DNA of 64,000 nt. Source: Oopsacas minuta. Its lineage: Eukaryota > Animalia > Porifera. The notes beneath the pieces were generated by a model. The model was not told the origin of the DNA and ran no database searches. It saw only the letters and a list, made by a program, of their open reading frames with translations. A program made the translations under genes and the position numbers. The stretch is from contig JAKMXF010000012.1 of the NCBI GenBank assembly GCA_024704765.1, forward strand, positions 42,397 to 106,396. Direction: 5' to 3'. Positions 238-64,000 of the stretch are shown here, piece by piece (positions within the stretch are counted from its first letter, which is position 1; every line of letters begins with the position of its first letter).

Positions 238-3200
238 GTAAATACGGAGTACAGAAGGACAGGATGGATAAGTCAGCTGTAGGACATGATTACCAATCTG
301 ACCTCTCAGCTCATGAGTCACAGACAGATCACTCTAAAGGATTTGGAGGTTAGTTCAAATTGGAACTAAGTAAAGATTCTTTTCTAACGAAATTCCTCTG
401 TTTATATGTATAACAAACTATACACACAGGTGTGAAAATATGATTAATCTGTTCTTGTATAGGTAAATACGGAGTACAGAAGGACAGGATGGATAAGTCA
501 GCTGTAGGACATGATTATCAATCAGACCTATCTAAACACGAATCACAGACAGACGCAGCTAAAGGGTTTGGTGGCAAGTGAGTAAATATATGATTAATCA
601 TATTGTAACACCTCTGTGTAGCATGTGGCTATTCCTGTAGTTCCCATAATCTCTAGAAAACTCCCACATATCATGTAGTTATGCATACATTATAGATATG
701 GTGTAGAGAAGGATAGGATGGATAGATCAGCTGTTGGACACGATTACCAATCAGACCTGTCCGCTCATTCATCACAGACAGACCACTCTAAGGGTTTCGG
801 AGGGCGGTACGGGGTAGAGAAGGATAGGATGGACAGATCAGCTGGAAGCTTTTCTGATATGACAGATGTTAAATCTGTTCCCAAACCAGAGGTTGTTGTT
901 GTGCTGACTATGATACTTACAGGACAGTGAGGACACATTTTTATCTGACACAATACGCCACTTTTAAACACGTGTTTACAACTAGCAAAATATTTTCATA
1001 CAATTACAGTCAACTCTTGTTTTATCTAACACAAATATATAGAAATTCCCGCTCATATCGAAGTGTGAAGTTGTACACATTAATTATTATTATTATTATT
1101 ATTATTATTTACGTTTATAGGTTCGAACAAAACCCAAAGGCGCCAAGTCAGGTTTATTCGCTAAATTCGAACAAATGTCAGTAGAGCAAGACAGTACTAC
1201 TCAGCAGGGAGCAAATGAAGCGAAGGAGAGGAGAAGACTCCAAGAAGCAGAAGAGGCCGCTAGACAAAGAGAGATTAATGCTACCTTACCTGTTGATGAT
1301 GATACAGAAGAAATTAGTGTTGATGAACCAAAGATTGTTAGGTAAATACAAACAAACAAATAACAAATAAACAATTAAGCTAGTTTGCTGTAACCTCGTA
1401 AATACAAACAGCAACAGATTATGAACGAATTTCCCGGAGTAATACCTGTCCACTTTTCTCATTACATTTCTTTGATAATAAACAAATAAACAAACAAACA
1501 AACAAATAATGTGTATTTCTAGACCACTTCCATCTAAATTAATTCAAATGGCAACACCTCCCAAAATGGCAGATATGCAATCACAAGAACCTGAGGAACC
1601 AATACGAAGACCTCCTTCTATAGTTCCAATTTCTGTTCCAGGTCAGAGAATGGAACCGGAACCAATTCCAGATAGTGAAGTACTTTATGACACCTCTGAA
1701 GACGCATACGAGGTTAGAATTCAAACTTACTTCCTTAAGTACAGCCATCTTAATTCTGATACCATATGACATCCGTTTACAACCTGAACCATGGAGGACA
1801 GCAAGTTGTCCACTGGACCTCAAATATGGGAGGATACACATAATGTGTTATAATTAGTATAGGGGTACACGTGTGGAAACGGTTAGGAATGGTAATTTAT
1901 AGAAAAGGACAAGTGTGAATATAATAATTTAATAAATAATAAACAAACAAGTAAATAACAACAATAATATAATTAATATATATTTATTACTTTATCACTC
2001 AAACTAGCACAAATAATATCAAAGTTATTATTAACAATTATTCCTGAAGGTTTATTACATGTAATATTGTGTATCAGCTGTCCATCTTCAGTAAATATAT
2101 TAATTGAATTTCCCTTATTATCGCTAATAATAATATTATTACACAAATCAAAACACAGAAAAATGAAATTTATTCCATTTTCTAATTTTATGAAACTTTT
2201 CAATAAATCACCTGATTTAGAGAATATGTGTATATTATTAATCTTATTATTGTCTGCTACAAATATATTATTATTATTTATTTTGACGTCATGCGGTTCT
2301 ATAAGTTTGTCTTTTCCTATTTCTCTAATATATTCTAAATCAGAGCTGAATACTGCAATTCTATTATTACCCAAATCTGCAACTAACACTTCTCCATTTG
2401 TGTCAGTTGTTAGACCAAAAGGGACATTAACACTTCTCTTAACACTCTTAATTAATTTGTAATTTGTTTTAGAGAATTTAAATATAGCACTAAGTGTCGA
2501 ATCACTTATAAACACCCATTCCTTATTTAATGCTATACTGTGTGGATCCTCTAGCTCCCCTTTACCAAATTCATGAATGAACTTACCTTCTGTAGAGAAG
2601 ATCTGTATTCTATTATTGCCTACATCTGCTATATAGATCTTATCTCCATCTAGAGCTAGTCCATTAGGGTAATACAGCTCTCCTTTCTCACTTCCAGGTT
2701 TTCCTATCCTTCTGATTGGCTCAGTCTTGTTTCTGTAGACTTGTTGTACAGCTATATCCTGAATAGACCCCAACTTCTCCAGCTGTTCTAGGAGAGAGTC
2801 TAGACCCTCAGGGTAGAAGGAAGGGATTGGGATAGGTGTTTCTATTTCGTATTTCTTTTGTTCCTTTTTCCAATTCTTTATTTGATCTTCTTGGAACTTT
2901 ACTACTTCATTCTGTTGAATGCTAGTTTCCATTAATTGTCTGATCATCTTCTCCAGTTCTGCGAATTGTTTCTTTCTCGTATTCTCCTTTCTTAGATAGT
3001 CCTGCTTCATATCGAACAGCTGGACAAGCAGCTGATCTCTCCTCTCTGTCGCAATCCGAATTATCTTCTCGAAGGTGGAATGGATCAGCTGTTCCGTTAG
3101 TTCGAAATGGTTGGTAGAAATTTCTTCTGAGTATTTGGTGGCCATTTGTTTGTTGTTCTGTTTATGATTATTCTCATTTATACAGACTGTATTTATACAA

Positions 3201-4788
3201 ATTCATACATTAATTATTCAGGTGTTAAGTGATGAAATAGAAACTTACAACTAATCACATTTCCTTAAACTCTACCACGAGACTATTGTCTCACAGAATT
3301 ACGGATGTGTTAGGTCAGATAGCTTTCAATATGTAAATTAGTTCCAGTTATAACTAGCCACATTCCTTGTATAGAATTAGTTGCTATGCTGTATTAGCTA
3401 TTAGTTCCAATTTGTGTAGAATTTAATAATCTAAGAAGTTTGCATTTTAAGTAATATTTCGTTGTTTATTATTATTTATTCGTGTTTGTTACTAGTAAAC
3501 AATCCCTTGATTACTCACATATACAATTTCCGGTGGCTATACTTCCTGTGACGTAATATCTGTTTGCTATTACATGTGTTGTCAGTATTGTTATCGTTTC
3601 TTAAACTGTACTTTAATATTCTATAATACTTATTGTTTCAATTCATTCTATAATCTTAAAGAATGGAAATTTCTGTTCGTATTAGCGACGGTGTATGTAT
3701 GTTCACCAATTTACTCTTTTAGACTCCAATAGAAACTGTCCAAGCCCCAGCCCCAGTATCACAACCCCGACTGCCGTACAACCCCCCTCTCCCTCCTATA
3801 CCGACACAACAACCAATTGATGACCCAGAGGCTCTGTACGAAGAACCACCAGTAACCCAAGAGTAAGATTAGTTATTTACACACAGTGTAACCTCTATAT
3901 ACGGAGTCCCAGAGACGCCGAAAATGTTACACCGTATGTGGAGGTTACACTATACACATAACTCCTGTATTATTTCTTAATGTAAGGTGTTAAGTATTAG
4001 TGCTGCTACTTTCAGTTCGTATTGCGAATTCTTTCACGATTTCCTTAGTTACCATATGTTATTAAAATATTTACAGTTATATATAAATACCCGCTTATAT
4101 TCAAGTGTGAAAATTGTACTAAAATAAGTAACAAATATTCCATCGGTATATTAACTAATTATTACGGTCCCTTGAGATTTGGTATAACAGGAGTTTACTG
4201 TTTTCGTTGCAACTTTGTTTATGTTTACTTTCTATGTGTCAGATATCCAAATGAACAAACATATTTTGAGCCAACAGCTGACAACGAAGAGGCTACATAT
4301 GAATCCGTTCCTGAGCCACAACAAACGATACAACAACCTGATGACATAGCTAGTGGTAGTACTACTGCAAGAGCAGTTTTTGATTATCAGGTTTGATTAC
4401 TAATATTTATGGATTATTAATAAACAAATAACATAAACAACAAATAAACAACAGATAAACAACAGATAAACAGGCGAATAAACAAATACACAAGCAAACA
4501 GACAAACAAACAATTACTAACACAAATACCATAAACAACAGACGAACAGGCAAACACACAAATACACAAACAAATAAACAAACAGACAAACAAGTACATA
4601 AATAAACAAACAAACAAACAATTACCAACACAAATCCAATCTCTATCTAGGCTACAGATGAAGATGAACTAACTTTTGACGTGAATGACGTCATAAATAA
4701 CATTGAGCAAATAGATGAAGGTTGGTGGGTAGGTGAGTTCAATGGGGTGAGAGGACTGTTCCCCGCTAATTATGTAGAATTAATTTAA
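238..4788 (+). CDS. CTTN: Cortactin (Src substrate), 3' portion; 5' exons lie upstream of the window. Exons about 238-348, 463-577, 696-891, 1121-1341, 1523-1712, 3723-3862, 4243-4390, 4651-4788
   Basis: 37-aa HS1/cortactin repeats ([20 protein letters not shown]...TDHSKGFG), then a helical region (LFAKFEQM), a Pro/Tyr-rich region and a C-terminal SH3 (ARAVFDYQ|[45 protein letters not shown]). GT-AG sites and exon phases are consistent throughout. Confidence 0.93.
1973..3145 (-). CDS. Coiled-coil + six-bladed NHL-repeat protein (TRIM-NHL-like, no RING/B-box), copy 1, nested antisense in cortactin intron 1713-3722
   Basis: Intact 390-aa intronless ORF. N-terminal helical region, then repeated NHL motifs (P-x-G-I/L-A...IYIAD..NNRIQIF). 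Confidence 0.88.
   Translation of the reverse strand: MATKYSEEISTNHFELTEQLIHSTFEKIIRIATERRDQLLVQLFDMKQDYLRKENTRKKQFAELEKMIRQLMETSIQQNEVVKFQEDQIKNWKKEQKKYEIETPIPIPSFYPEGLDSLLEQLEKLGSIQDIAVQQVYRNKTEPIRRIGKPGSEKGELYYPNGLALDGDKIYIADVGNNRIQIFSTEGKFIHEFGKGELEDPHSIALNKEWVFISDSTLSAIFKFSKTNYKLIKSVKRSVNVPFGLTTDTNGEVLVADLGNNRIAVFSSDLEYIREIGKDKLIEPHDVKINNNNIFVADNNKINNIHIFSKSGDLLKSFIKLENGINFIFLCFDLCNNIIISDNKGNSINIFTEDGQLIHNITCNKPSGIIVNNNFDIICASLSDKVINIY
3884..3952. mobile_element. Short MITE family G (CAGTGTAACCTC...GAGGTTACACT, core GGACGCCGAAAAATGCTACCCC). Related copies near 15875-15945, 38506-38655, 40008-40075, 48768-48830, 54920-55037
   Basis: Terminal inverted repeats and a shared internal core in several dispersed copies. 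Confidence 0.6.
4410..4630. repeat. Degenerate (AAAC/AAAT)n intronic simple repeat. Similar tracts at 1345-1510, 12250-12375, 17950-17995, 51750-51900
   Basis: Directly visible. These tracts produce the spurious MFVCLFV-type ORFs in the track. Confidence 0.9.
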
Positions 4789-5060
4789 CATCTGTGTTTA
4801 CTGGATAGATATTATTGTTGTTTGTTGTTTGAGCTTTGCTTTTATACTGAATAGATTGTGGATTTGTTTATTTTGTTGTTTACTAGATGTAGATCTTATT
4901 TTGTTATTATTTATCTTATTTGTTTGTTTGTTTATATGATTATTCACTAGCCAATTGAACTGGGACTATAAATGTGAATATTTCGCATATATTGAATCAT
5001 ATTTTCACACCTTTAATTCTGCTGGACTTGTTGTTATTTACGAATAGCTTTTCTAAACTA

Positions 5061-8000
5061 ATGAACTTCGCAAGAGCCTCGCATTCCTTTAAAGCAGAAC
5101 AAGACTATGAACTCACTCTATCACAAAATGACGTCATCGCTGCCGTTGAAATTGTAGATGAAAGTTGGTGTAAAGGTATCCTAGTTACCAACGGGGCCAT
5201 TGGGTATGTACCTGTCGCATTCGTTGAATTCTTTCAACCTGAATCCGTTGTTGCAACTGATGAATTGGACACGGGACAGCTGGATGATTTGAATTTCTCC
5301 ATCGGCGATATTATCTACAGATTGTCTCGTGTGGATGAGAATTGGTCGATTGGGTTTACGAATGGTAGAACTGGTCTCTATCCTAATTTATATGTAGCAC
5401 CCAGAACGAATAAAGGTTAGCGAATATTTGTATGAAATTCTATATACAGAGCTGAGCTCTTGTAGAGCTTTTATAGCGCATTCTATCGGTGTTAATCATT
5501 GTTATTAAGATCAGTTGCTTATAACTTGCTGCCTTCGGTTCGCTTCCCACGCCAGCATTTCCCTTTTCGACTGTAGATTACCTAATATGGAATAACTCAA
5601 CTTGATTCTTCAAATTTTCGTGATTTTAATGTACGTAACACTAAACTGTGCTCTAGTAGAGCTGAGCTATGAATATATTATCTCTATCTGTATATTGTCC
5701 TGCTTTTTCTGAGTGCCAAATCCTGTATAATTTCGATAGGTGATATCAGCCGCCAAGAATCCCGCTATCCCGCTATTACTTATTATTACCTCAGAAAGGT
5801 GTTAAGTATATAACAAATTCTCTATTTTAGGTCTGGATAGCCCAAAAGATAAACTCTCCCCATACGCTAATTCACAGATGTTCGCACCGGGACCTACCGA
5901 CCCGGTGTATGCCAACTTCCCAGTCACTAATGAACACACGAAAGACTCTAACCTATCCCAATTCGACCACTTAGAGCCACTATCACCTGAATTCGACCAT
6001 CTAGACGACACCGGAGATATGTTGAGACAATTGGAGAAGGAATTAGAATTGAATGAAGCGAGATTAAAGAGTTTTGATATTAAACCAAGCGAGGAGATCA
6101 CGACAAGTCAGGTGATTTCTGAATCACAAATTCGTAAACAAGATATAAAGTTGAATTTGGAATTGGATTCTGTCATTGGAAATTTGGAGGAGAATTTGGG
6201 AGATTTTGACAATAGACTGGTTACACCTGTATATGCCAACGGTCCACAGACTCACATATATAATCTGGACAAGCCGAAGCCCCTTGAGTACAATAATATC
6301 GAGACGACTGTCCCTAGCAACGAAAAATCTGAGAAGAATGCGATTAAAACTGAACTTAAATTAGAGAAGGCATTAGGAAAATTGGAGAAGAAATATCAAC
6401 CATCTAGTAAACTTGATGTTTACGAGGGAAACAAAAGTAAACAAGGACAAACAAACAAACCACAACCAGCTGTTAAACGAAAACTTCCCAAAACACCTGA
6501 AAAGGCTTTTTCACAGCCAAATTTAATTATGTCAAAAATTGCAATACAAAATTCTAGAAAACTTCCGAACGCAAAGCCGCACATCCCTTCCCCCTTCACT
6601 AAGCCCATTAAAGTGTTACCTACTTTGGACCAACATGACCCCATGGGGTCATCTGGTGGTCCTATCCCAAAGAGAATAGCTCCACCTCCTCCAGCCAATC
6701 AGAATCCTCTCTCTGTTGATGTTACTCAATCACTGTGTGATATGAGACAGAGAACCAATCAAAATGCTGAGTGTAAGTTATACATATGTATATTGTAAAC
6801 AAACAAACAAACAAACAATATTATCATATAGATCCCCCGAGTGAGTACAGCTTCAAAACAGACTCCTTTTGCACCCTAACCCCCTCCTTAATAGAGGAAC
6901 AAATAAGACTCTCTCCTCCTCTAACACCTCCCAATCACTACCCTCAACCCTTCAGAAGGGTCAAGAGTAGCAACGAAGATATTAACCTATTTCCTAACAT
7001 TCCACGACAGTCTCCTGTTGCTAAGAAGAGTGATTTTAGTCCAAATATCAAAGTTAGTTAAGAATGTTTATTTCTTTGTTTGTTTATTTGTTTAGTTATT
7101 TACTTGTTTAGAAAGTTAATACACATAAGAAGGTAACAATAAGGAGCAGAAGTCTTGGTTCATGTTCCTCAGATGACTCCAGGAAATCTCCTATTGACTT
7201 GGAGTCTATAGAAGATCCATTCACAGGGGTAATTATAAATGAGAATATCTTATACGCTTACACAGCAACCAGTATATCCTTTAGGAATGTTATTTTATTG
7301 TACACAGTGTAACTTTCATAAACATGCTACCCCTGTCCCCCGTACCGTTTGTGGAGGTTCACAATATTTCATACAACTTTCTAGGGAGAGCAGCGTTCCT
7401 CAAGAAGACGGACTGTCAACGGTCTAACCTCCTTCTCATCTCCTGTTAGCTCCACCAAACAGAGACACTTCCCTCAATCAGAGATAGACCTTAACGAATA
7501 CCCCGGTGTTATTGAGCTACAGCAACAGATTAATGAAATAGAACGGAAACTAGAAGTATGTTTTGACACCTATTAATTATATATATGTACACATCGACCC
7601 GAAAAGTAGTCCTCATTCGATGATCTCCTCCCTCACTGAGGGGTGTAGCCAAATACCAATGAGGTAACCATGGAAACTGGGACATAACACGTCACTGAAT
7701 CACGTTAGGGAGTCGGTGAATATATATTATGTCCCCGTTCAAAGGTGTTAAAATATGAATAATCACCCCTTAATATATTTGTTTACTTGTTTTGTAGGTT
7801 GAAGAAAAGATGCATTCTTGTTTACAAACAATGCTACAGGTAAACAACTAAACAGCAAACATATATACACTTTGTTTACATGTTTATTTCTTTGTTTCTT
7901 TGTTATTAGGTTGTAACAGGTTGTGACGCGGCTAAAGAAGAACAATTAGAAGTTCGACAAGTAGCCTGTGAACATGAAATACAAGAATTACAGAATAAAC

Positions 8001-11000
8001 TTCAAATATTGAAAGGTGTGATATACTTACATTTCTTATATTACTAAATCTGTAGGATAATTTGAATTACATGGAAAATGTATTAAAATATGATTAACCC
8101 TTCGAAAACTTGTGGAAATATTAATAATTATGAACTTAGGTGAGAAAGATACAATATTCACAGACCAAGTTAATGAATCACCAAACTTCTCCTCTCCCTA
8201 TAGCACCCCTAAGCGATCCAAGAATGGATCTCCTGACAGAGTAATGCAGTCTATCGCTGCTATAGATACACAATTGGAGGTATGGAATGTTGTGTTAATA
8301 TTTTAATTGAAAGAATTCGTTCCCATCATGAGTCTTGGTATAAGGTGTCCACGGGTGAAAGAGGTTGGGGACTACTATATGAAAATTGTTACATATTTGT
8401 TTGCTGTTTCGTTGTTAGGCAGAAGAACGTGTTTTGATTGGTTTGGAGAGTCAGTTAGAAATTCCTCTCGATCCTGTTGTTAGGCAAGAGGTGTTATGCA
8501 AGATACAACAAACACAGAGCAAAATACAAATATTACAGATAGAATTACAGAATAGAAAAGGTAAACAAACTAATAAACAAGTATCAAGTAAACAAGCCAA
8601 CAAACAAACAAACATGCCAAAAGGCAGTTAATAAACAAACAAACAAATATATTTTTCCTGTAATACCATCTAAAGACATTCCTTCAGCTACCATAGCAAC
8701 GTCACAAGACCCCCGATTAACACGTCTAGAACACAGACAGTACGTCCTTGACGAGATAGTCCAAACAGAGAGAGACTTCTCTAAACACATGTACCTTACA
8801 TGTACATATGTGCTACAAGCTTGTAGGGACGCTAACATATCACAAATGGAGATGAATATATTATTTGGGAATATGGAGGCTATCTCCAAGGTCTCAGAGG
8901 TACTGTTAGTTGGACTACAGGACACTTTAAGGAATGTTATCGAGAAACAAACAATAGGTAAATATGTGTACTTTTGTTGTTGTTGTTCTGGTTTACTGTT
9001 TATTAAATATAGGTTTGTGTTTTCTAATGAATGCCAGAGATTTGAAAGACACCTATGCCAATTACTGCAGAAACCTAGACGAGGCTCTCACCCTATTGGA
9101 CAAGGTTGGTTCCTTTCACACCGTTTATATCTCCAACTTTGAATACTTTAAATACCATTATTTACAATCCGTTACTATGCTAGTTTGATGAAGAACATCC
9201 TATACACGGGGTGTTAGAATATGGCCTCTCTCAAATACGGTCTCATGTCCAATGCTGGGACCTACCCTCTATCCTAATTAAACCAATGCAGCGGATCCTG
9301 AAATATCCTCTCCTTTTGGGGGACCTTGTGAAGTATACGGAAGATGACCATCCGGACAAGAAACACCTAATTAGCGCGTCTAAACTAATGGGAGAAGTAG
9401 CTAATCAGATTAACGAGGTTAAGAGGAGAAAGGATTTAGGTGATTAATCATATTTTCACACCTTTTGACGTATATATTTCAAAATGATACTACCCTGTCT
9501 TATTATTATTCTTATTATTTGTTTGTTCTATTTTTAGTACTAAAGTATCACGTCAATGAACAGGGCCTCAAAAGCAAGCTTGAAAATATGAACTGGCATT
9601 CTGTTATTAAGAAAACTAGAAGAGTTAATCAAATAATATTAAAATCAGCTGGCATTAACACCTCAGTAAGTTTGTTGTTTTCCTGTTGTTCTTGTTGATT
9701 TGTTGTTGTTTTACTTCAGACAGTAGATGAAGTATTCCAAGCAGAAGAGAGGAGATTCAAAGAACTGGAAAAAACTCTGAAATCAGTTGTTAAAAGTATT
9801 ACAACTCTTGTAACATATATGCAGGTAATATTATACTAAATATCTATAATTCACACCTATTTTGAAGTCATTGAAAATGGGCGCCGAAAAACCCCTAGGT
9901 CAGCTGTTCCCAACATTTTTCACCCTGTGGGCCCCCTATACCAATAGTAACACATTCTGTGGACTCCGGGTTGGGAACAGCTGCCCTAGGGTCTGTAACA
10001 AGTGTTAAAGGGATCACTTGTCCGTAAACAGAACAATACAAAATTGGCCTGATCTTCATGTGACCCAATTCTACCAACATTCCTTATAGGAAGGCCTTGA
10101 CAACAGACTAATAGTATGTGAAGGATTAACTGAGTTATGTAATGGTAAAGATCTACAGTGTGTTACAGCTTATAATAAAGTATACAGACAAACTATATCT
10201 GAACAGATATTCCCGCAATTAGTAAGTGAGATTAATGTTCACTTCTCAGCTCAAGGAACCGCGATAATCGGTATAACCCATGGAATATTCAATCGACTCA
10301 CGTTATATCGAATACCCGCTCATATCGAAGTGTGAATTGTACAAATATGGTCCCAAATCGTTAAAATGACATATATTCCATTGGTTATATCGGAGTACTT
10401 ATCATGGTCCCTTCAGCTGAGATATAATAGGAGTTTAGTGTATATTACAAACAGAAATGTATATTTTCCATTTATAGTCAGACTCCTTGAACTTAAGAGT
10501 CCTCCAACCTATTCAGAACCTCCTTGGACTGTTCCAAGGTCCCTTACACTTAATTCAGAAGCGAAATGACAAACTTCTGGACTATGACGCTTGTCTTAAT
10601 AAAGCTGAGAAGACGCGAGATGTTATGAAGCTTAAAGCTGTATGTTTGATCCTTTTATATGAATTGTAAGATTAGCTATCCAATCAGTTACCTTCTTAGA
10701 AGGAATATTTAAGCCTACTAAGGCTGTTATTTTATTGGCCAATTGGAATTCTCCTTGGGTGAGTGTTCCGAACAAATCCAGAGACACTCTGACAGGGGAC
10801 CATTCGTGCCAACCACGCGGGCGCCAACTACAGGTTCGGTCTGGCTACTCGAGGGCAGGATTTAAAACCCGTGGCAAATCCCCCGTCTGCCCGCTGGAAC
10901 CACCACTAACCAACTGTCTTCAAATATCATTTAATCATATACCCCTTCACATAGATGAAAGATGAGCTACAATTAGCTAAATTGAATTACGACGCCCTTA

Positions 11001-12964: not shown

Positions 12965-15900
12965 TCACCAAATGAATGGTGATCGTTCTCTAATTAACCT
13001 AACACCGCTATTAATCCATTCTTCTCTCTTTATCCATACCTCACTGAATATGTCGAGTGATGCCACTATTCTGCCACCTGTCCAGCTTAGTTTTGATATG
13101 TCACCTTCTCGTGGAGGTGTGAAAATCTCAACTTGTAGCTTTTTTAGAGCAGAAGGCAAAGTTTCCTAAAATGTTCAAAGTAACATACAGTCAGCTCCTG
13201 TTATATCTAAGCTCAAGGGACCGTAATAATAATTTCCATGTAATCCGATGGAATATTTGTTACTTTGACGGTTTGGGACCATATTTGTACAATTCACACT
13301 TCGAGATAAGCAGGTATTTCTATATATCCATATTAGATATAACAGGAATTGACTAATATACCTTGAGTCTATTCTGCAGGAAACTTAAACTCTTTGGGAA
13401 CTGAAACCCAGCTCCCGTTATAACTATATTCTTATATATTTTCTGTTTATTCTGTTCATTAGAACAGTTTATTGATAAATGTATTGCTTCTTCAATACTC
13501 AATAGTTTTGCTTTAGTATCTGCTCCACCAATAGATTTCGTGTTTAGAAGCTTGGTTATTAGTGGCAGCTGTAGTTCTGTTTCTTGCTCGTCAATATGCG
13601 TACCTACGGTATAAATACGAATATTTTATTTGTCAGTAGACTCTGCCTAATAGAACCACCGGGTAATCAGGTCACTTAGCCAGAAATGACCTATAGCCAG
13701 TGGTTCTCAAACCCCTGAAGACTCATACGAGGTTAGAATTCAAACTTATTTCCTTAAGTACAGCCATCTTAATTCTGATACCATATGACATCCGTTTACA
13801 ACCTGAACCATGGAGGACAGCAAGTTGTCCACTGGACCTCAAATATGGGAGGATACACATAATGTGTTATAATTAGTATAGGGGTACACGTGTTGAAACG
13901 GTTAGGAATGTTAGTTTGTAGAAAAGGACAAGTGTGAATATAATAATTTAATAAATAATAAACAAACAAGTAAATAACAACAACAATAATATAATTAATA
14001 TATATTTATTACATTATCACTCAAACTAGCACAAATAATATCAAAGTTATTATTAACAATAATTCCTGTAGGTTTATTACATGTAATATTGTGTATCAGC
14101 TGTCCATCTTTAGTAAATATATTAATTGAATTTCCACAACAATCGCTAATAATAATATTATTATACAAATCAAAACACATATGAATATATCTTTCTCCAT
14201 TTTCTAATTTTATGAAACTTTTCAATAAATCACCTGATTTAGAGAATATGTGTATATTATTAATCTCATTATTGTCTGCTACAAATATATTATTATTATT
14301 TATTTTGACGTCACGCGGATTTATAAGTTTGTCTTTTCCTATTTCTCTAATATATTTTAAATCAGAGCTGAATACTGCAATTATATTATTACGATAATCT
14401 GCAACTAACACTTCTCCATTTGTGTCAGTTGTTAGACCAAAAGGGAAACTAACACCTTTCTTAACACTCTTAATTAATTTATAATTTATTTTAGAGAATT
14501 TATATATAGCATTAAGTCCCCTATCACTTATAAACACCCATTCCTTATATAATGCTATACCGTATGGATGCCATAGCTCCCCTTTACCAAATTCATGAAT
14601 GAACTTACCCTCTGTAGAGAAGATCTGTATTCTAATATTGATTGTATCTGCTATATAGATCTTATCTCCATCTAGAGCTAGTCCATGAGGGTAATTCAGC
14701 TCTCCTTTCTCACTTCCAGGTTTTCCTATCCTTCTGATTGGCTCAATCTTGTTTCTGTATAGTCCAGCTATTTCCTGAATAGACCCCAACTTCTCCAGCT
14801 GTTCTAGGAGAGAGTCTAGACCCTCAGTATTGAAGGAAAGGATTGGGATAGGTGTTTCTATTTCGTATTTCTTTTGTTCTTTTTTCCAATTCTTTATTTG
14901 ATCTTCTTGGAGCTTTACTACTTCATTCTGTTGAATGGTAGTTTCCATTAATTGTCTGATCATCTTCTCCAGGTCTGCTAATTGTTTCTTTCTTGTATTC
15001 TCCTTTCTTAGATGGTCCTGCTTCATATCGAACAGCTGGACAAGCAGCTGATCTTTCCTCTCTGTCGCAATCCGAATAATCTTCTCGAAGGTGGAATTGA
15101 TCAGCTGTTCCGTTAGTTCGAAAGGGTTCATAGGAATTTCATCTGAGTATTTGGTGGCCATTTGTTTGTTAGTCTGTTTATGATTATTCTCATTTACAGA
15201 CTGTATTTATACAAATTCATACATTCATTATTCAGGTGTTAAGTGATGAAATAGAAACTTACAACTAATCACATTTCCTTAAACTCTACCACGAGACTAT
15301 TGTCTCACAGAATTACGTATGTGTTAGATCAGATGGCTTTCAATATGTAAATTAGTTCCAGTTATAACTAGCCACATTCCTTGTATAGAATTAGTTGCTA
15401 TGCTGTATTAGCTAACAGTTCCAATTTGTGTAGAATTTAATAATCTAAGAAGTTTGCATTTTAAGTAATATTTCGTTGTTTATTATTATTTATTCGTATT
15501 TGTTACTAGTAAACAATCCCTAATTATTCACATATACAATTTCCGGTGGCTATACTTCCTGTGACGTAATATCTGTTTGCTATTACATGTGTTGTCAGCA
15601 TTTTTATCGTTTCTTCAATTCTACTTTAATATTCTATAATACTTATTGTTTCAATTCATTCTATAATCTTAAAGAATGGAAATTTCTGTTCGTATTAGCG
15701 ACGGTGTATGTATGTCACCAATTTACTCTTTTAGACTCCAATAGAGACTGTCCAAGCCCCAGCCCCAGCGTCACAACCCCCTCTCCCTCCTATACCGACA
15801 CAGCAACCAATTGATGACCCAGAGGCTCTGTACGAAGAACCACCAGTAACCCAAGAGTAAGATTAGTTATTTCACACAGTGTAACCTCTATAAACGGAGT

Positions 15901-18900
15901 CCCAGAGACGCCGAAAATGCTACACCGTATGTGGAGGTTACACTATACACATGACTCCTGTTATTATTTCTTAATATATATCATGACAACCATATTGGGA
16001 TTAGGAATGTATTTCAAACAATCATTTACAGTATTTCACCTCTCAAATCTGATTGGCTACCTTTTAAGTTGTATGTGAATATTTCGCTTGAAAATTCTAA
16101 AGCTTTATTTGCCATAAGGTGTTAAGTATTTGTGCTACACCTTCACCCACGGAACCCCTGCCACTAAACAACATATTGAATTATTGATCCTCACATCCTG
16201 TATTAATTTGGATCAAGTGTTAAACACTTTGGGTCCTTCATGGCTGCTGAACTAGCCTTTTAGATACCCACCAAACACCTAGATAAAATACGGACCCCAG
16301 GGAGAAGACCACTGCTCTATGGGGGTCCTTGTTCCAATCCCCTAAAAGTAATTTCTCGGATTATACAACTAAATATTAACCTGAAACCAAATCTTTCTTA
16401 GTTTCCAATAGATTCATGTCATCAAGATAATCTTCAGAATGTGGCTGCTGTATTTTATGAGATATACAATTATCACCAGTAACCATGGTAATGAAACTAG
16501 GACAAAAGAATGTTAGTGGCGCTAATATTGGCTCATCATATAGAAATATCCTAAATTGTATTGCATTTGAATCTGGTGGATTCACACGGAATGGATATTC
16601 TTTCACGCCTGTTAGTTCCATATCCAAGTGGCACATATCTTCTTTCAACTCATCCATCAGACATCTGTCCACACGGTCTGTGATGTCCCAATTCTTGTAA
16701 GGAAAACCTAAATGAATAGTAGTACGATGAATAGCGAATATTTTGGCGAGAGTTCATTTGATTATTATTCTATTGAATTTGATATAGTCAACTCCAGTGA
16801 TATAGAAATACCCGCTCCTAAACCGTCAAAGGTAACAAATATTCTATCAGTTATATCGAGTAATTATCACGGTCCCTTGAGCTTCGATATGACAGGAGTT
16901 GACTGTCCAATTAATATTTCAAAATCCTACAACCTGATTGCTTGATGAGCCACCAGAAAGCCCGCGTGACGTCATTCCCTCCATAATTAAGTCTCAATCT
17001 AGTGTTAGGATTTGAAATTCCATCTTCCACACAACACACACTAATAGTCTGATCGCCTACATCTACAATACAACCAGAACTAATACCAGAACTATACATA
17101 GCACATACCGAGCTCTGTTGTATAGCAACCGAGCCGAACTTCAATCTGGTTAGTAGTACATCTACCATACTCTTCACTTCTCTGTGAAAAACAGCTGATT
17201 AAGCTAGTAATTTGTCAGCAAAATTCGACGGACAAAATCGTATATTTTCGTTTCTAGTTGGCTGAATATTTTCATATCCTTGGCAGCCAGTTTTTGTCAA
17301 ATTTATGTTACAGAAAGGCCAGAAAATGATTTTTTGGACAATAGTACAAGTTCCTCAAGTCTATGGGACATGTGGAACGATAACCTGATGCACTGGGTGT
17401 CTGGCCATGTTGGAGTATTAGGAATGATCCAATGATGACCCTCTCTAATTATCAATTACAGCCAACTCCCATTATATCAAAGCTCAAGGGACCGTGATAA
17501 TTACTCGATATAACCGAGGAATATATGTTATTTTGACGGTTTGTGACCATATTAGTACAATTCACACCTCAATATAAGCAGGTAATTCAATATATCCATG
17601 TTAGATATAACAGGAGTTGAAATATAACTCACGTTCTATCAAACAAATCTGGAATTAACAAGAGTACTTTATACTCTCCAAATTCATTTATGCCACATAA
17701 ATCTGCCACCACGCGCCCCCAAATATCCTCCAAACTTTGTAACACCATTTCATGTGATTGTGTCGCTGTTACATTAAATCTCCCGCGTTTTATTGGCCAA
17801 TGTATTGAGTATGGCGCCTTTTTTGATAAATGTAGCGCGTCTTCTCCAATATAGAATTTATTCGGCGGATTTATAACTGTTGAAGTTATCTCTGAAGGTT
17901 CTGATAATTCCGTTGGGGCAATTGTCTCGTTCTTTTCACGTAACCTTTTGTAAACAAACAAGTAAATAAATAAACAATAAACAAACAAACAAACAGTTAC
18001 CTTTTAGGTAGTACTGTATTTGTTGTTTTAGTTCTCACTTCTTGTATGAAACTTAACAGCTCTCCTAAATGTTCCTCTCTCCACTCGTTATATTTGTTTA
18101 TATTCTCTTCTTCAAGATTATATAGCAATGTTTCGTCGACGGTTTCACCTAAATGAATACAGCAGAGACCGGTTATAAGAACACCCTTAGGAGTAGCAAT
18201 ACAAGTTCTCATAACCGGTTAAGATTCCGTGTATGACTATCAGCAAATGACTTAGCATCCTGAAAAAATGTTTCGGGAAGAGGACAGTTTTCGAGATATG
18301 ATTATGCTAAGTGGTTGTGTCACTTCCAATTGCAACAAGGTACCTCAGAATGTTCTCCTCCCGAAAATAATGTCTCAGGACGCTACGTCATGGATAGAGT
18401 AGAGTACCTATTGCCTCATAAGTTGGAAATTATTAATAATTCTACACACATGTCTATACATACAAATCTAATAGGAATAATACAATCTATACGCGAGATT
18501 CTGATTGGCTCTTGAGATGAAGCGGGCAATTTAATAAGAATATGCATACGCGTGATTTTCTATATAATAGAGAATTTGTGTGAAGTTTAATATTTGTAAT
18601 TCTATCTTTTGTATTCTTACATTGTGACCCTTATAGGGTACAGATTTTTGTTAATAATACATGGTAGGATTTGGTCACTGGCGTCGTGTGGTTTGTAATA
18701 CCAGTAGTATAGTATGGTGTCTGAAAGCATCCAGTGAAACTCCTGGTAGATGAAAAATTTGATTTGCAATTGGCACAGAAATTTCATATATGGAGAATAC
18801 TTTTGGGAGCTAGCCCCCCCCCCCCCACTTGCCGTATGGCACGACGCCACTGTTGTATTCAGAAGCTTCAGAAACCTGGGTTAATGGACCCTTGGTGGTC

Positions 18901-29865: not shown

Positions 29866-31026
29866 TTAATAAATATTTATTACACCATCATAACTAGCAC
29901 AAATAATATCGAAGTTATTATCAACAATTATTCCTGTAGGTTCATTACATGAAATTTTGTGTATCAGCTGTCCATCTTTAGTAAATATATTAATTGAATA
30001 TCCCCAATTATCGCTAATTATAATATTATTATACAAATCAAAACACATAAAAATAAGTCCTTCTCCATTTTCTAATTTTATGAAACTTTTCAATAAATCA
30101 CCTGATTTAGAGAATATGTGTATATTATTAATCTTATTTTTGTCTAACACAAATATATTATTATTATTTATTTTGACGTCACACGGATATATAAGTTTGT
30201 CTTTTCCTATTTCTCTAATATATTCTAAATCAGAGCTGAATACTGCAATTCTATTATTCTTATCTGCAACTAACACTTCTCCATTTGTGTCAGTTGTTAG
30301 ACCATGAGGGAAACTAACACCTTTCTTAACACTCTTAATTAATTTGTAATTTGTTTTAGAGAATTTAAATATAGCATTAAGTCCCCAATCACTTATAAAC
30401 ACCCATTCCTTATATAATGCTATACCGTCTGGATACTTTAGCTGCCCTTTACAAAATTCATGAATGAACTTACCCTCTGTAGAGAAGATCTGTATTCTAT
30501 TATTGTATGTATCTACTATATGGATCTTATCTCTATCTAGAGCTAGTCCACGAGGGTACTTCAGCTCTCCTTTCTTACTGCCATGTTTCCCTATCCTTCT
30601 GATTGGCTCAGTCTTGTTTTTGTAGGGTACAGCTATATCCTGAATAGACCTCAACTTCTCCAGCTGTTCTAGGAGGGAGTCTAGACCCTCAGTATTGAAG
30701 GAAGGGATTGGGATAGGTGTTTCTATTTTGTATTTCTTTTGTTTCTTTTTCCAATTCTTTATTTGATCTTCTTGGAGCTTTACTACTTCATTCTGTTGAA
30801 TGCTAGTTTCCATTAATTGTCTGATCATCTTCTCCAGGTCTGCTACTTGTTTCTTTCTCATATTCTCCTTTCTTAGATAGTCCTGCTTCATATCGAACAG
30901 CTGGACAAGCAGCTGATCTCTCCTCTCTGTCGCAATCCTAATAATCTTCTCGAAGGTGGAATGGATCTTCTGTTCCGTTAGTTCGAAATGGTTGGTAGAA
31001 ATTTCATCTGAGTATTTGGTGGCCAT
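29866..31026 (-). CDS. Coiled-coil + NHL-repeat protein, copy 3
   Basis: Intact 386-aa ORF. The 5' flank 31027-31182 matches copies 1 and 2 up to the gap; the 3' flank does not. Confidence 0.88.
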   Translation of the reverse strand: MATKYSDEISTNHFELTEQKIHSTFEKIIRIATERRDQLLVQLFDMKQDYLRKENMRKKQVADLEKMIRQLMETSIQQNEVVKLQEDQIKNWKKKQKKYKIETPIPIPSFNTEGLDSLLEQLEKLRSIQDIAVPYKNKTEPIRRIGKHGSKKGELKYPRGLALDRDKIHIVDTYNNRIQIFSTEGKFIHEFCKGQLKYPDGIALYKEWVFISDWGLNAIFKFSKTNYKLIKSVKKGVSFPHGLTTDTNGEVLVADKNNRIAVFSSDLEYIREIGKDKLIYPCDVKINNNNIFVLDKNKINNIHIFSKSGDLLKSFIKLENGEGLIFMCFDLYNNIIISDNWGYSINIFTKDGQLIHKISCNEPTGIIVDNNFDIICASYDGVINIY

Positions 31027-31182: not shown

Positions 31183-32085
31183 NNNNNNNNNNNNNNNNNN
31201 NNNNNNNNNNNNNNNNNNNNNNNNNNNNNNNNNNNNNNNNNNNNNNNNNNNNNNNNNNNNNNNNNNNNNNNNNNNNNNNNNNNNNNNNNNNNNNNNNNNN
31301 NNNNNNNNNNNNNNNNNNNNNNNNNNNNNNNNNNNNNNNNNNNNNNNNNNNNNNNNNNNNNNNNNNNNNNNNNNNNNNNNNNNNNNNNNNNNNNNNNNNN
31401 NNNNNNNNNNNNNNNNNNNNNNNNNNNNNNNNNNNNNNNNNNNNNNNNNNNNNNNNNNNNNNNNNNNNNNNNNNNNNNNNNNNNNNNNNNNNNNNNNNNN
31501 NNNNNNNNNNNNNNNNNNNNNNNNNNNNNNNNNNNNNNNNNNNNNNNNNNNNNNNNNNNNNNNNNNNNNNNNNNNNNNNNNNNNNNNNNNNNNNNNNNNN
31601 NNNNNNNNNNNNNNNNNNNNNNNNNNNNNNNNNNNNNNNNNNNNNNNNNNNNNNNNNNNNNNNNNNNNNNNNNNNNNNNNNNNNNNNNNNNNNNNNNNNN
31701 NNNNNNNNNNNNNNNNNNNNNNNNNNNNNNNNNNNNNNNNNNNNNNNNNNNNNNNNNNNNNNNNNNNNNNNNNNNNNNNNNNNNNNNNNNNNNNNNNNNN
31801 NNNNNNNNNNNNNNNNNNNNNNNNNNNNNNNNNNNNNNNNNNNNNNNNNNNNNNNNNNNNNNNNNNNNNNNNNNNNNNNNNNNNNNNNNNNNNNNNNNNN
31901 NNNNNNNNNNNNNNNNNNNNNNNNNNNNNNNNNNNNNNNNNNNNNNNNNNNNNNNNNNNNNNNNNNNNNNNNNNNNNNNNNNNNNNNNNNNNNNNNNNNN
32001 NNNNNNNNNNNNNNNNNNNNNNNNNNNNNNNNNNNNNNNNNNNNNNNNNNNNNNNNNNNNNNNNNNNNNNNNNNNNNNNNNNNNN
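31183..32085. other. Assembly gap (903 N)
   Basis: Run of N. The poly-X ORFs in the track are artefacts. Confidence 1.
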
Positions 32086-32185
32086 TAATTCTTCCCACAA
32101 TCTTCATAAACATAACAAAAGATCTAATTTATAGAATAGACAATATCCAATATGGAACTAACACTTCTCATGGTTCCATTACAAA

Positions 32186-61248: not shown

Positions 61249-64000
61249 TAATTATATCGGGTAACTTAGTTACAGATGAGGTGATTAGATATTTTATTAA
61301 AAATACTGACATTTAGTTTTATAAATTACGCGGGCTCCGAGGGGGATCAAGGACCTATACGGACAAGTGTATTAGCCATTTTTAGGCGAGGAATTCTCAA
61401 ATAAGACACTAAACTATCATGGCGCCTAAATCACTCACAATAGCGCCTTTTGGTATAAAGAATGTCCATATTATTATTTTATGATATTTAACGTAAAATC
61501 TGGCGGTTTTTATCAAATATAAACAGCTGTAGAAAATAAACATTCACTTGAACAAGAAGTGAAAATTCTGGAAATTGCTTATAACATTTCAATGCAAATA
61601 AAAATACAAACATCACTACAAATATACAAAATATGAATTTTCCAGGAAAAGTTATGTCAGCAAAATATATTTATTTGGTAATATTTTGTTACAAATAATT
61701 GAACTTGGAATTATTTCAATTTCCAATGTTGTCATGTTTTATTTTGGCAACAAATCATTATACAAATACGAAAATGTATAATAACCATGATTAGAATGCT
61801 GAAAATATCAAATTGTCCATAGCAACATAATTTGAACTAAGCTATGTCATAGCAAGAAGCTGACAATCAAATTCTGAAAATAAACTTGCATATCAGTGAA
61901 AATAGTTCACAATTTGCAGAGTCAAATTATCGTCCAGAAAAGGTGCTAAAATGTGTGAATAATATCCCTAAATAAATTCCTAAGTCTAGACTACTTATAT
62001 TTCTGGTAACAACTTACATTCCTCTAGCGTAGTGGGGGATATACACATCCACATTCCTTTCTTGGTGATAACTGAACTAATATTAAATCGGAACTAGAAC
62101 TTAAAGTATCATATTTCATACTAGCCTAAACTGAAACTAGCATTTTAAGCTAAAAATAAATGTGTAATTTTTGATAATTCACTAACACCATGAATCTCAT
62201 ATTTTGTAAAAACCACGGTATATCACAATTAAATCAAATAATAGTTTCAATGCTGTCTAACATAGTTCTGGTTTAGTAGACAGTAAGATGAAAAGACATG
62301 ATTATAATATATCTTATGATTGACACCTTGGTCAAACAGGTCTTTTAGATGATAGATATGAATCATAATTATATGTGTGTTATGACGCGTGATTAGGCAA
62401 GTATAGATTTATATATTATCATTGTTTCACACCTCGCGATTTAGGTCAAATCCACAAGTAAGGTGTATTAATACCTAAACCTATATCCATACCCACCTAA
62501 ACACCTGGATCTGCTTACCAGTTTCTTGTATTTTTAGTTTGAAATATGATTAATTCTTCCCTCTATTATGAGAAAAAATATCAAATCACCGCCTGTGCCG
62601 ACTGGAATTTTACCAAATTAGGTTTGGTGGATTATTGAAAGTATAATATTCTAGGAAATTGAATTTTACTAAAATAGAATTCTTCATCACTGATTATTCC
62701 TGTTTAATAAGCGGAAGCTAATCTCTAGGATAATTTTGAAAGGTTCACTAAAGGTGTGAAAATATGATTACAGTGGAGTCTCCCAAAACGGACACTCCGA
62801 AAAGCGGACAACACATCTACAAAGGACAAGCTTGTAGGACCAAATAGGTTAATACCACATGGAAATATCCCTCCTTCAGTTCTGACTAGGAAGTTGATGA
62901 TACAATTAACATAGATGTTACGACAGAAATATGAAAACTTCAAAATGCACAAAAGACAACAAATTTGTTTTGTTGTAATAAGGATAATATATTTCCTCTG
63001 ACATTATATTTTGTAAACAATAACAACAAACAAATAATAATCTCTAAAATAGCTGACAAAACAAAAATTACAAATAATTGCACCGAATCAAACACAAACA
63101 AACAAACAAATAATTCAATATATTTGTAATACAAATATTTCTTGTCTAATAAACAATAAACTTTGACACATAACTATACAACAGTCACCTCTTGTTATAT
63201 CAAACACGGATTTATCAAAATACCCGCTGATATCGAAGGGTGAAATGGTACAAATATGGTCCCAAACCGTCAAAGTAACAGATATTCCACCGGTTATACC
63301 GGAGTAATCATCCGGTCCCTTGAGGTCAGATATAACAGGAGGTGACTGTGATTGAGAATTGTTAAAATCTTCAATAATTCCATATTTAGAGTCCAAGGGA
63401 GTATGATCATTAATTCATATCATAAATACTTGCAAGTCCCCGCGCCAGCGATGTGTTATGAAATTCAGTTTGGAAACAGTCAACTCCTGTTATATCTAAG
63501 CTCAAGGGGCCGTGATAATTACTCCGATATCACCGATGGAATATCTGTTACTATAACGGTTTGGGACCATCTTTGTACCATTTTACACTTCGATATACGC
63601 GGGTATTTCTATATACCCGCGTTCAACATAACAGGAGTTGTGTTCATATTTTAACTGTAGCAATGATCTCATAAAATTATAAAGAATATTAGGTTAGATT
63701 ATTAAACTATAAACCTAACAACCGCCTTACACAATTGGAATTTAAATTAGTCAATGATAATAATAGCTATGAATAATATATCGTAAGAATTCGCCATATC
63801 TTATTGACAACAGAACTTTGGCGTAGAGAAATACACACAGTTGTTGATTATTGTTTCAATATGTATTGAGTATAGGTTTTACAGTTTCTGCCCTACCGCC
63901 CGCATCAAGTTTACCTGTCACATGAATATTGTCATTATTTCACCATTTTATCATGGAAATTCAAATACCATGCCATCAGATAGACATCATGTGGAGCTGA

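Follow-up and report, generated by a model that had tools for sequence, protein, structure and literature searches.

The stretch of DNA analysed here (the window) comprises 64 000 nucleotides of the genome of the glass sponge Oopsacas minuta (Hexactinellida; assembly GCA_024704765.1, contig JAKMXF010000012.1). Two of its genes are concerned: a complete cortactin gene, one intron of which houses a nested NHL gene, and an ARP8 gene, one intron of which holds a second copy of the same cortactin segment and of the NHL gene. The second copy is enclosed by two sequences resembling parts of a miniature inverted-repeat transposable element (MITE) of the hAT type. A reading made from the sequence alone (the sequence-only reading) had described it as DNA captured by such a MITE. 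The window was examined together with eight loci taken around NHL paralogues, 204 kb of the O. minuta genome in total. The cortactin segment of the window is called copy A, the copy in the ARP8 intron copy B, and the locus of paralogue P0003, on JAKMXF010000343.1, L002. Segments were compared by BLAST of the window against itself, followed by pairwise and three-way base-level alignments of A, B and L002. Reads were taken from runs X2 and X3, which are DNA-like and have a flat depth of 82-98x across the unique flanks of the copy B element, and from run X1, which is RNA-like (spliced contigs present). The best-supported joints within reads were considered, and negative statements about joints hold among those listed. 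The coordinates of the features are collected in the table.

Features of the filled element, its parental segment and its host intron (window positions)
Feature	Position	Strand	Remark
Parental segment (copy A) in the complete cortactin gene	1692-4009	+	Self-BLAST; NHL-A nested in the intron
NHL-A	1973-3145	-	Nested in a cortactin intron, copy A
Intact 83-bp MITE used as reference	9901-9983		Perfect 14-bp terminal inverted repeat (TIR); target site duplication (TSD) CCCTAGGT/CCCTAGGG, 7/8
ARP8 host intron, 2,777 nt	13602-16378	-	RNA-type contig (X1) joins 13601 to 16379, CT..AC ends
Left MITE end: 15-nt terminus CAGTGGTTCTCAAAC + C (= CAGTGGTTCTCAAACC)	13698-13713	+	Single occurrence in the window
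Captured segment (copy B), 2,425 bp	13714-16138	+	DNA copy of cortactin-locus piece 1695-4009
End of cortactin exon, last 17-18 nt, then GT donor site	13714-13731	+ (antisense to ARP8)	Aligned to 1695-1712
Older relic of a related MITE	13825-13910	-	74.5-76% match to MITE 9901-9983
NHL-B, intact intronless open reading frame (ORF), 388 residues	13995-15161	- (= ARP8 strand)	Pfam NHL, E=2.7e-14
Upstream region common to the NHL family, about 280 bp, copied with the gene	15162-15444	-	DNA depth about 125x single copy
Next cortactin exon (proline-rich region)	15735-15856	+	In-frame 18-bp deletion specific to copy B
Part (139 bp) of the following cortactin intron, absent from copy A	15976-16114	+	In L002:9030-9168, 95% identity
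Remaining MITE, 176 nt	16139-16314	+	ACC then TTCACCC (TTCACCCACGG...); degenerate TIR end ...GAGAAGACCACTG
NHL copy C	29866-31026		Further NHL units in L001-L007

That the host gene of copy A is cortactin was read directly from its sequence, which encodes tandem HS1/cortactin repeats, a proline-rich region and, at the C-terminus, an SH3 domain; the L002 paralogue has a Pfam HS1_rep match. Self-BLAST aligned 1692-3981 with 13711-15975 (94.03% identity across 2295 columns) and 3983-4014 with 16115-16145. The alignments confirmed the content ascribed to the segment: the end of one cortactin exon, the intron with its NHL gene, the next exon and part of the following intron, of which 282 nt are included. 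The identity of about 97% given in the sequence-only reading applies to the 1079 non-coding columns (97.2%), but falls to 94.0% overall and to 93.4% in the NHL ORF. Copy B and L002 are 93.1% identical across 2451 columns. Segment lengths are 2,425 bp in B, 2,315 bp in A and about 2,438 bp in L002. The sequence-only reading had described an insertion of about 140 bp in copy B. The 139 bp in question are also present in L002, which makes their absence from copy A a deletion of ancestral sequence. The cortactin exon at the left end of the segment is joined to upstream coding sequence in copy A and L002 and is truncated in copy B alone, and the cortactin-type sequence is therefore the parent. The introns and exon fragments kept in copy B show that it was copied from DNA, and retroposition of its NHL unit was rejected on the same grounds. 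The relic of a related MITE already existed in the parental intron (about 1806-1895 in copy A) and was copied along. NHL-B has a coiled-coil N-terminus and an NHL beta-propeller, and its protein is 85% identical to those of copies A and C. The boundary of the NHL unit is common to copies A, L001 and L003. The captured intron also contains a small palindromic element, TGTAACCTC...GAGGTTACA, at 15878-15950, equivalent to 3885-3950 of copy A; DNA depth in the bins containing this element corresponds to about 7-9 copies. Non-coding divergence of copy B is about 2.8%. The event is young and its parent is still recognizable.

The location within an ARP8 intron was borne out by the RNA-type contigs of run X1, which splice across the whole element and also join 13164 to 13361 with CT..AC ends (GT..AG on the minus strand). 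The spliced exons form one continuous reading frame ending in the conserved ...RERSPFIW stop, and ARP8 splices normally across the element. Only 96 + 64 = 160 nt of the host intron lie outside it. The capture explains an error in the public annotation, where NHL-B and the final ARP8 exons have been merged into a single deposited protein. Protein P0007 ('actin-related protein 8-like', 456 residues) consists of NHL-B residues 1-310 followed by the last two ARP8 exons (13361-13601 and 12968-13164), through a GT donor within the NHL ORF at about 14232 joined to 13601. Its 3' exons match the RNA splice junctions, and only the NHL-derived 5' part is unsupported. The splice from 14232 to 13601 was not found among the joints listed, in data where paralogues co-map and contigs lose rare variants.

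The neighbouring ARP8 intron (13165-13360, minus strand, 196 nt, RNA-supported) consists mostly of another MITE of roughly 170 bp, with TIR CAGTCAACTCCTGTTATATC... and TA-type ends, present in about 600 copies by DNA depth. About 30 nt of this intron are non-MITE. Either the MITE struck a very short intron or its insertion created the intron. More copies of it lie at 17457-17626, 63189-63349, 63476-63640, 10304-10448, 16816-16906 and 4126-4201.

The two flanks of copy B had been taken for halves of one hAT MITE, and the wider sample upheld this. Four further exact occurrences of the 15-mer CAGTGGTTCTCAAAC were found in the 204 kb, all as ends of hAT elements; they include the two termini of a 2.35-kb element (L002:4593-6947) and a single terminus of a 2.33-kb one (L007:4404-6730), whose opposite terminus differs from the 15-mer at two positions. 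The L007 element has a perfect 8-bp TSD, ATGTAGAC (8/8). The ORFs of these two transposase-encoding elements contain hAT-derived domains (DUF4371, FAM200/ZBED5-like) and are 40% identical to each other. On the right side, 16139-16314 shows collinearity with subterminal sequence of the 9901 MITE, of the MITE at L002:2619 and of the hAT ends. When the right end is reverse-complemented, it agrees with the left TIR in 11 of 13 positions, and the alignment includes a 2-nt indel. The 9901 MITE and L002:2619 have the same layout, namely TIR, 3-4 nt and TTCACCC (TTCAC in L001:3511), and TTCACCC reappears 3 nt past the insert, as it is positioned in these relatives. A shuffle-type test on the 28-mer alone gave weak significance (p about 0.04). 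The only ORF within the filled element is the NHL gene, so that the carrier has no transposase of its own. It is well founded, on sequence comparison, to regard the carrier as a non-autonomous hAT element of which the two flanks are parts; they are assigned to one element by collinearity, in place of a consensus for the MITE subfamily. The right MITE part has about 2.9 times single-copy depth in the DNA reads; judged from read depth, the sequenced animal would carry no more than about two other partial copies with an identity of 85% or higher.

Both junctions were read at the base level. On the left, MITE ...CAAACC is followed by CCTGAAG, where the donor reads ACACC and then TCTGAAG. On the right, donor ...GTGCTAC is followed by ACCTTCACCC. 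The trinucleotide ACC is found at both junctions (13711-13713 and 16139-16141) and just before the donor segment (1692-1694); at 13711-13713 it forms the last 3 nt of the left MITE end and can be assigned to MITE or donor. Removal of 13714-16138 gives an uninterrupted MITE of about 189 bp, collinear with family members, with zero MITE bases lost. The filled element has no 8-bp TSD: its flanks CCTATAGC and CTCTATGG match at 2/8 positions in register and at 5/8 with a 1-nt shift, in agreement with the earlier remark that no clean TSD is present.

Each junction is bridged by DNA-type unitigs with 0 differences: 13275-13779 on the left (85.5x) and 16020-16652 on the right (90.8x), the latter including the outer MITE end. 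A unitig of run X1 (15923-16408) also spans the right junction, and the interior of copy B is partly covered by difference-free unitigs (e.g. 15428-15839). An assembly artefact, a mis-joined haplotype or a chance likeness of the flanks to transposon ends could be considered, in a region with a 100-250-copy gene family and assembly gaps (903 N, about 31.2-32.1 kb) and with supporting runs that come from a single sample. Such an origin is scarcely credible in view of the bridging unitigs, which are at unique-flank depth, and of an exact 15-mer hAT terminus combined with a correctly positioned TTCACCC, which is beyond chance. The junctions are as deep as the unique flanks, so the filled element is present once and an empty allele is not indicated in this sample. 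No second filled copy was found in the 204 kb. No empty allele and no joint skipping the insert was found among the joints listed, the 16-nt side being too short to place. Contigs of run X5 (organism B, outgroup) align at exons and repeats only, and a joint with 30-nt sides at 16170/16351 gives no usable reading.

The NHL family comprises about 120-270 copies by DNA depth and consists of intronless genes encoding a coiled coil and an NHL propeller. Matches at E<=1e-10 were obtained for 237 database proteins: the best-scoring are from O. minuta, and most of the 120 that were listed belong to a group of 55-60% identity present in ENA only. The 204 kb contain 14 NHL units, several of them in local clusters. 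The dispersed units begin about 280 bp before the ATG and end 30-75 bp past the stop; these limits are common to them, and neither hAT ends nor a poly(A) tail was found there. The upstream boundary of copy C is unreadable, a 903-N assembly gap (31187-32089) lying directly upstream of it. In five of the seven loci taken around NHL paralogues, an ORF resembling a hAT transposase lies no more than about 5 kb from an NHL gene (L002:4986-6242, L003:6405-7172, L004:14155-15720, L006:1526-2012 and L007:4793-6448). This may be an association only, in neighbourhoods rich in transposable elements.

The sequence-only reading had proposed that capture by MITEs is a route by which the family spreads. In one rival account, a mobile Pack-hAT element would have captured the gene elsewhere, transposed into the ARP8 intron and spread NHL genes. 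The TIR-like ends that bracket the cargo and the hAT-like ORFs near NHL genes would suit this account. It is nevertheless highly improbable: the 8-bp TSD is lacking, the junction unitigs are at single-copy depth, 0/13 of the other sampled NHL units lie between hAT termini, and the other paralogues have unit boundaries of their own, unrelated to hAT ends. Copy B is the one case on which the proposed route of spread depends. It is also very unlikely that the filling of hAT relics recurrently seeds NHL copies in unrelated introns, from which sense copies such as NHL-B could yield chimeric NHL::ARP8 transcripts by way of the GT donor that P0007 uses within the NHL ORF. If this were true, the NHL-B locus would be a case young enough to show both junctions still, and the seeded copies would be independently transcribed.

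The captured gene had been described as intact and quickly diverged. The ORF is intact, but the fast divergence belongs to the family: dN/dS (the ratio of non-synonymous to synonymous rates) in the propeller is about 3.2 for all three pairs (A-B, A-L002 and B-L002), with dS of 0.027-0.034, near the non-coding divergence. In the coiled coil, pairwise dN/dS is about 1. On the branch leading to copy B, the propeller has 3 synonymous and 12 non-synonymous changes (omega, the same ratio for the branch, about 1), and these counts fit continued function and drift alike. The pattern of divergence resembles that of a diversifying recognition family.

The parental segment was examined in both cortactin-type loci. 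The window from 571 to 9210 is duplicated at L002:415-12564, on the other contig, over at least 8.6 kb at about 94% identity, and L002 may be either a partial paralogue or a divergent haplotig. The hAT element at L002:4593-6947 stands in place of about 350 bp of exon-like window sequence (6006-6358), and a TIR element 635 bp long, which has an 8-bp TSD (L002:12604-13238), lies about 40 bp past the 5' limit of the L002 duplicate. In the three-way alignment, private changes in non-coding columns number 11 in A, 19 in B and 27 in L002; A and B as sisters therefore fit a clock best. Copy A, which lies 12 kb upstream in the same orientation, is weakly favoured as donor by this clock and by the known cis bias of such events, but is not proven. 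The cortactin donor of the sequence-only reading thus stands as a type of locus, not as a unique copy. An abundant TA-type MITE of a different family, roughly 80-120 bp to the right of the copy A segment, was not copied. Capture by a macrotransposon, or by neighbouring transposon ends, was also considered and was rejected, since no hAT ends are present at the parental boundaries 1692 and 4009.

The filled element is probably the result of in-situ filling of an old resident MITE by copied DNA, that is, a single-copy Pack-TIR formed by transposition-independent gap filling or template switching. We infer the following order of events. The starting state would have been a short ARP8 intron with a resident non-autonomous hAT element of about 189 bp. 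At 13-16 nt inside the left end of this element, a break would have arisen or synthesis would have stalled. Repair would then have copied 2.4 kb from a locus of the cortactin type, most likely copy A, which lies 12 kb upstream; synthesis would have entered the donor via the 3-bp microhomology ACC and returned to the same spot of the MITE. The copied piece would by chance have held the whole intronless NHL gene and its upstream region, giving a new intact paralogue in sense orientation within ARP8. The ACC at the junctions and the complete MITE point either to copying into a break, primed by microhomology, or to a switch of template to the donor and back again. The lack of a TSD and the degenerate right TIR fit an old MITE that was filled later. 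The bases at the junctions indicate a history that would differ from that of an internally deleted element rebuilt after excision. Capture by gap repair, as put forward earlier, is thus retained as far as the class of repair synthesis is concerned, but movement of the filled element is unsupported by TSD or depth.

The breakpoint and the state of the termini also bear on an excision-triggered, abortive gap repair, in which the MITE was excised, resynthesis from the sister chromatid strayed to cortactin, and the MITE was then completed. The genome contains hAT elements that are potentially autonomous and share the 15-nt terminus, and the breakpoint lies just within the TIR. A randomly placed insertion would hit a hAT-type element in only about 1-3% of cases, judging by the share of such elements in the 204 kb. 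The same explanation was given for the filler DNA of maize Ds-like elements (Du et al., 2011; PMC3260210). We nonetheless consider it unlikely. Zero MITE nucleotides were lost and synthesis would have returned exactly to its point of departure, which a break within the element explains without coincidence. Larger deletions are expected from abortive gap repair according to Tan et al. (2021; PMC8277862), and with a degenerate right TIR and no TSD the MITE was maybe a poor substrate for transposase.

Several points weigh against filling of a resident MITE as set out above. At position 16 of about 189, the breakpoint lies close to the terminus, in contrast to the breakpoints of Tan et al., which are skewed towards the interior; a trigger related to transposase is possible. 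The earlier reading had called for a search for empty or other filled copies of the joined MITE halves. Neither the 204 kb nor JGI metagenome contigs yielded an unfilled copy of the exact subfamily (16136-16314, joined halves), and the sequence of the MITE before insertion is for this reason deduced from its relatives. The donor is ambiguous, copy A and L002 being near-equal parents (about 93-94%); because of this second cortactin-type locus, it is not uniquely identified. Finally, the reads of runs X1-X3 come from a single sample, perhaps the source of the assembly, and their independence of the assembly is not assured.

The element was compared with three known systems. In animals, Tan et al. 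(2021; Nat Commun 12:4280) reported 370 Pack-TIRs in 100 genomes, 208 of them on hAT elements. Single-copy Pack-TIRs were concluded to arise by transposition-independent gap filling. Cis parents lie mostly within 15 kb, microhomology has a median of 2 bp, and the distance between breakpoints is small (median 4.6% of the size of the transposable element). Carriers are old and degenerate, and chimeric transcripts are frequent. The present element is similar in having 100-5000 bp of host sequence between two parts of one degenerate TIR transposon, hAT being the commonest carrier, and in its cis parent at less than 15 kb, short microhomology, closely spaced breakpoints, old carrier, little or no loss of transposon sequence, single-copy state, intronic location and proneness to chimeric gene models. 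Its 2,425-bp cargo lies between flanks of 16 nt and 176 nt, where at least 10 bp of each terminus are required; the parent is at least 90% identical with a length ratio of 80-120%, and the copy is not a retrocopy. Two filters of that study are not cleanly passed: the parental match is not unique, and the other MITE beside the parental segment lies close to the 100-bp limit. Unlike the cases of Tan et al., the host is a glass sponge (sponges are not mentioned in the text of that paper), a complete gene was captured along with its upstream region rather than a fragment, and the breakpoint is near the terminus of the transposon.

The maize Ds-like elements Ds2-22 and Ds-l4 (Du et al., 2011) are also hAT elements with little beyond their TIRs and with gene-derived filler that includes exons and an intron. 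The tested ones were unresponsive to transposase, and capture was ascribed to replication errors in break repair (PMC3260210). Unlike the present case, they are from a plant, have 8-bp TSDs and carry mostly gene fragments, which come from other chromosomes. Plant Pack-TYPE elements (Pack-MULE, Pack-CACTA and Pack-hAT; Gisby and Catoni, 2022; PMC8903248) share the non-autonomous TIR structure, the host coding DNA and the lack of a transposase. They are defined by TIRs and a TSD, with singletons discarded (packFinder logic); many are amplified, and capture through mobilization of neighbouring ends has been proposed for them. In contrast, the element described here has no TSD, is single-copy, and its parental locus has no hAT ends.

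This kind of event is already catalogued in other animals, and the understanding of the class is unchanged. The O. minuta element extends the Pack-TIR route of duplication, with junctions at base-pair resolution, to Hexactinellida, among the earliest-branching lineages of animals. It also shows that the cargo of such duplications can be an entire gene together with its upstream region, beyond fragments. As a young case with a recognizable parent, it provides a worked example for comparing models in which a break occurs inside the transposable element with those based on excision.

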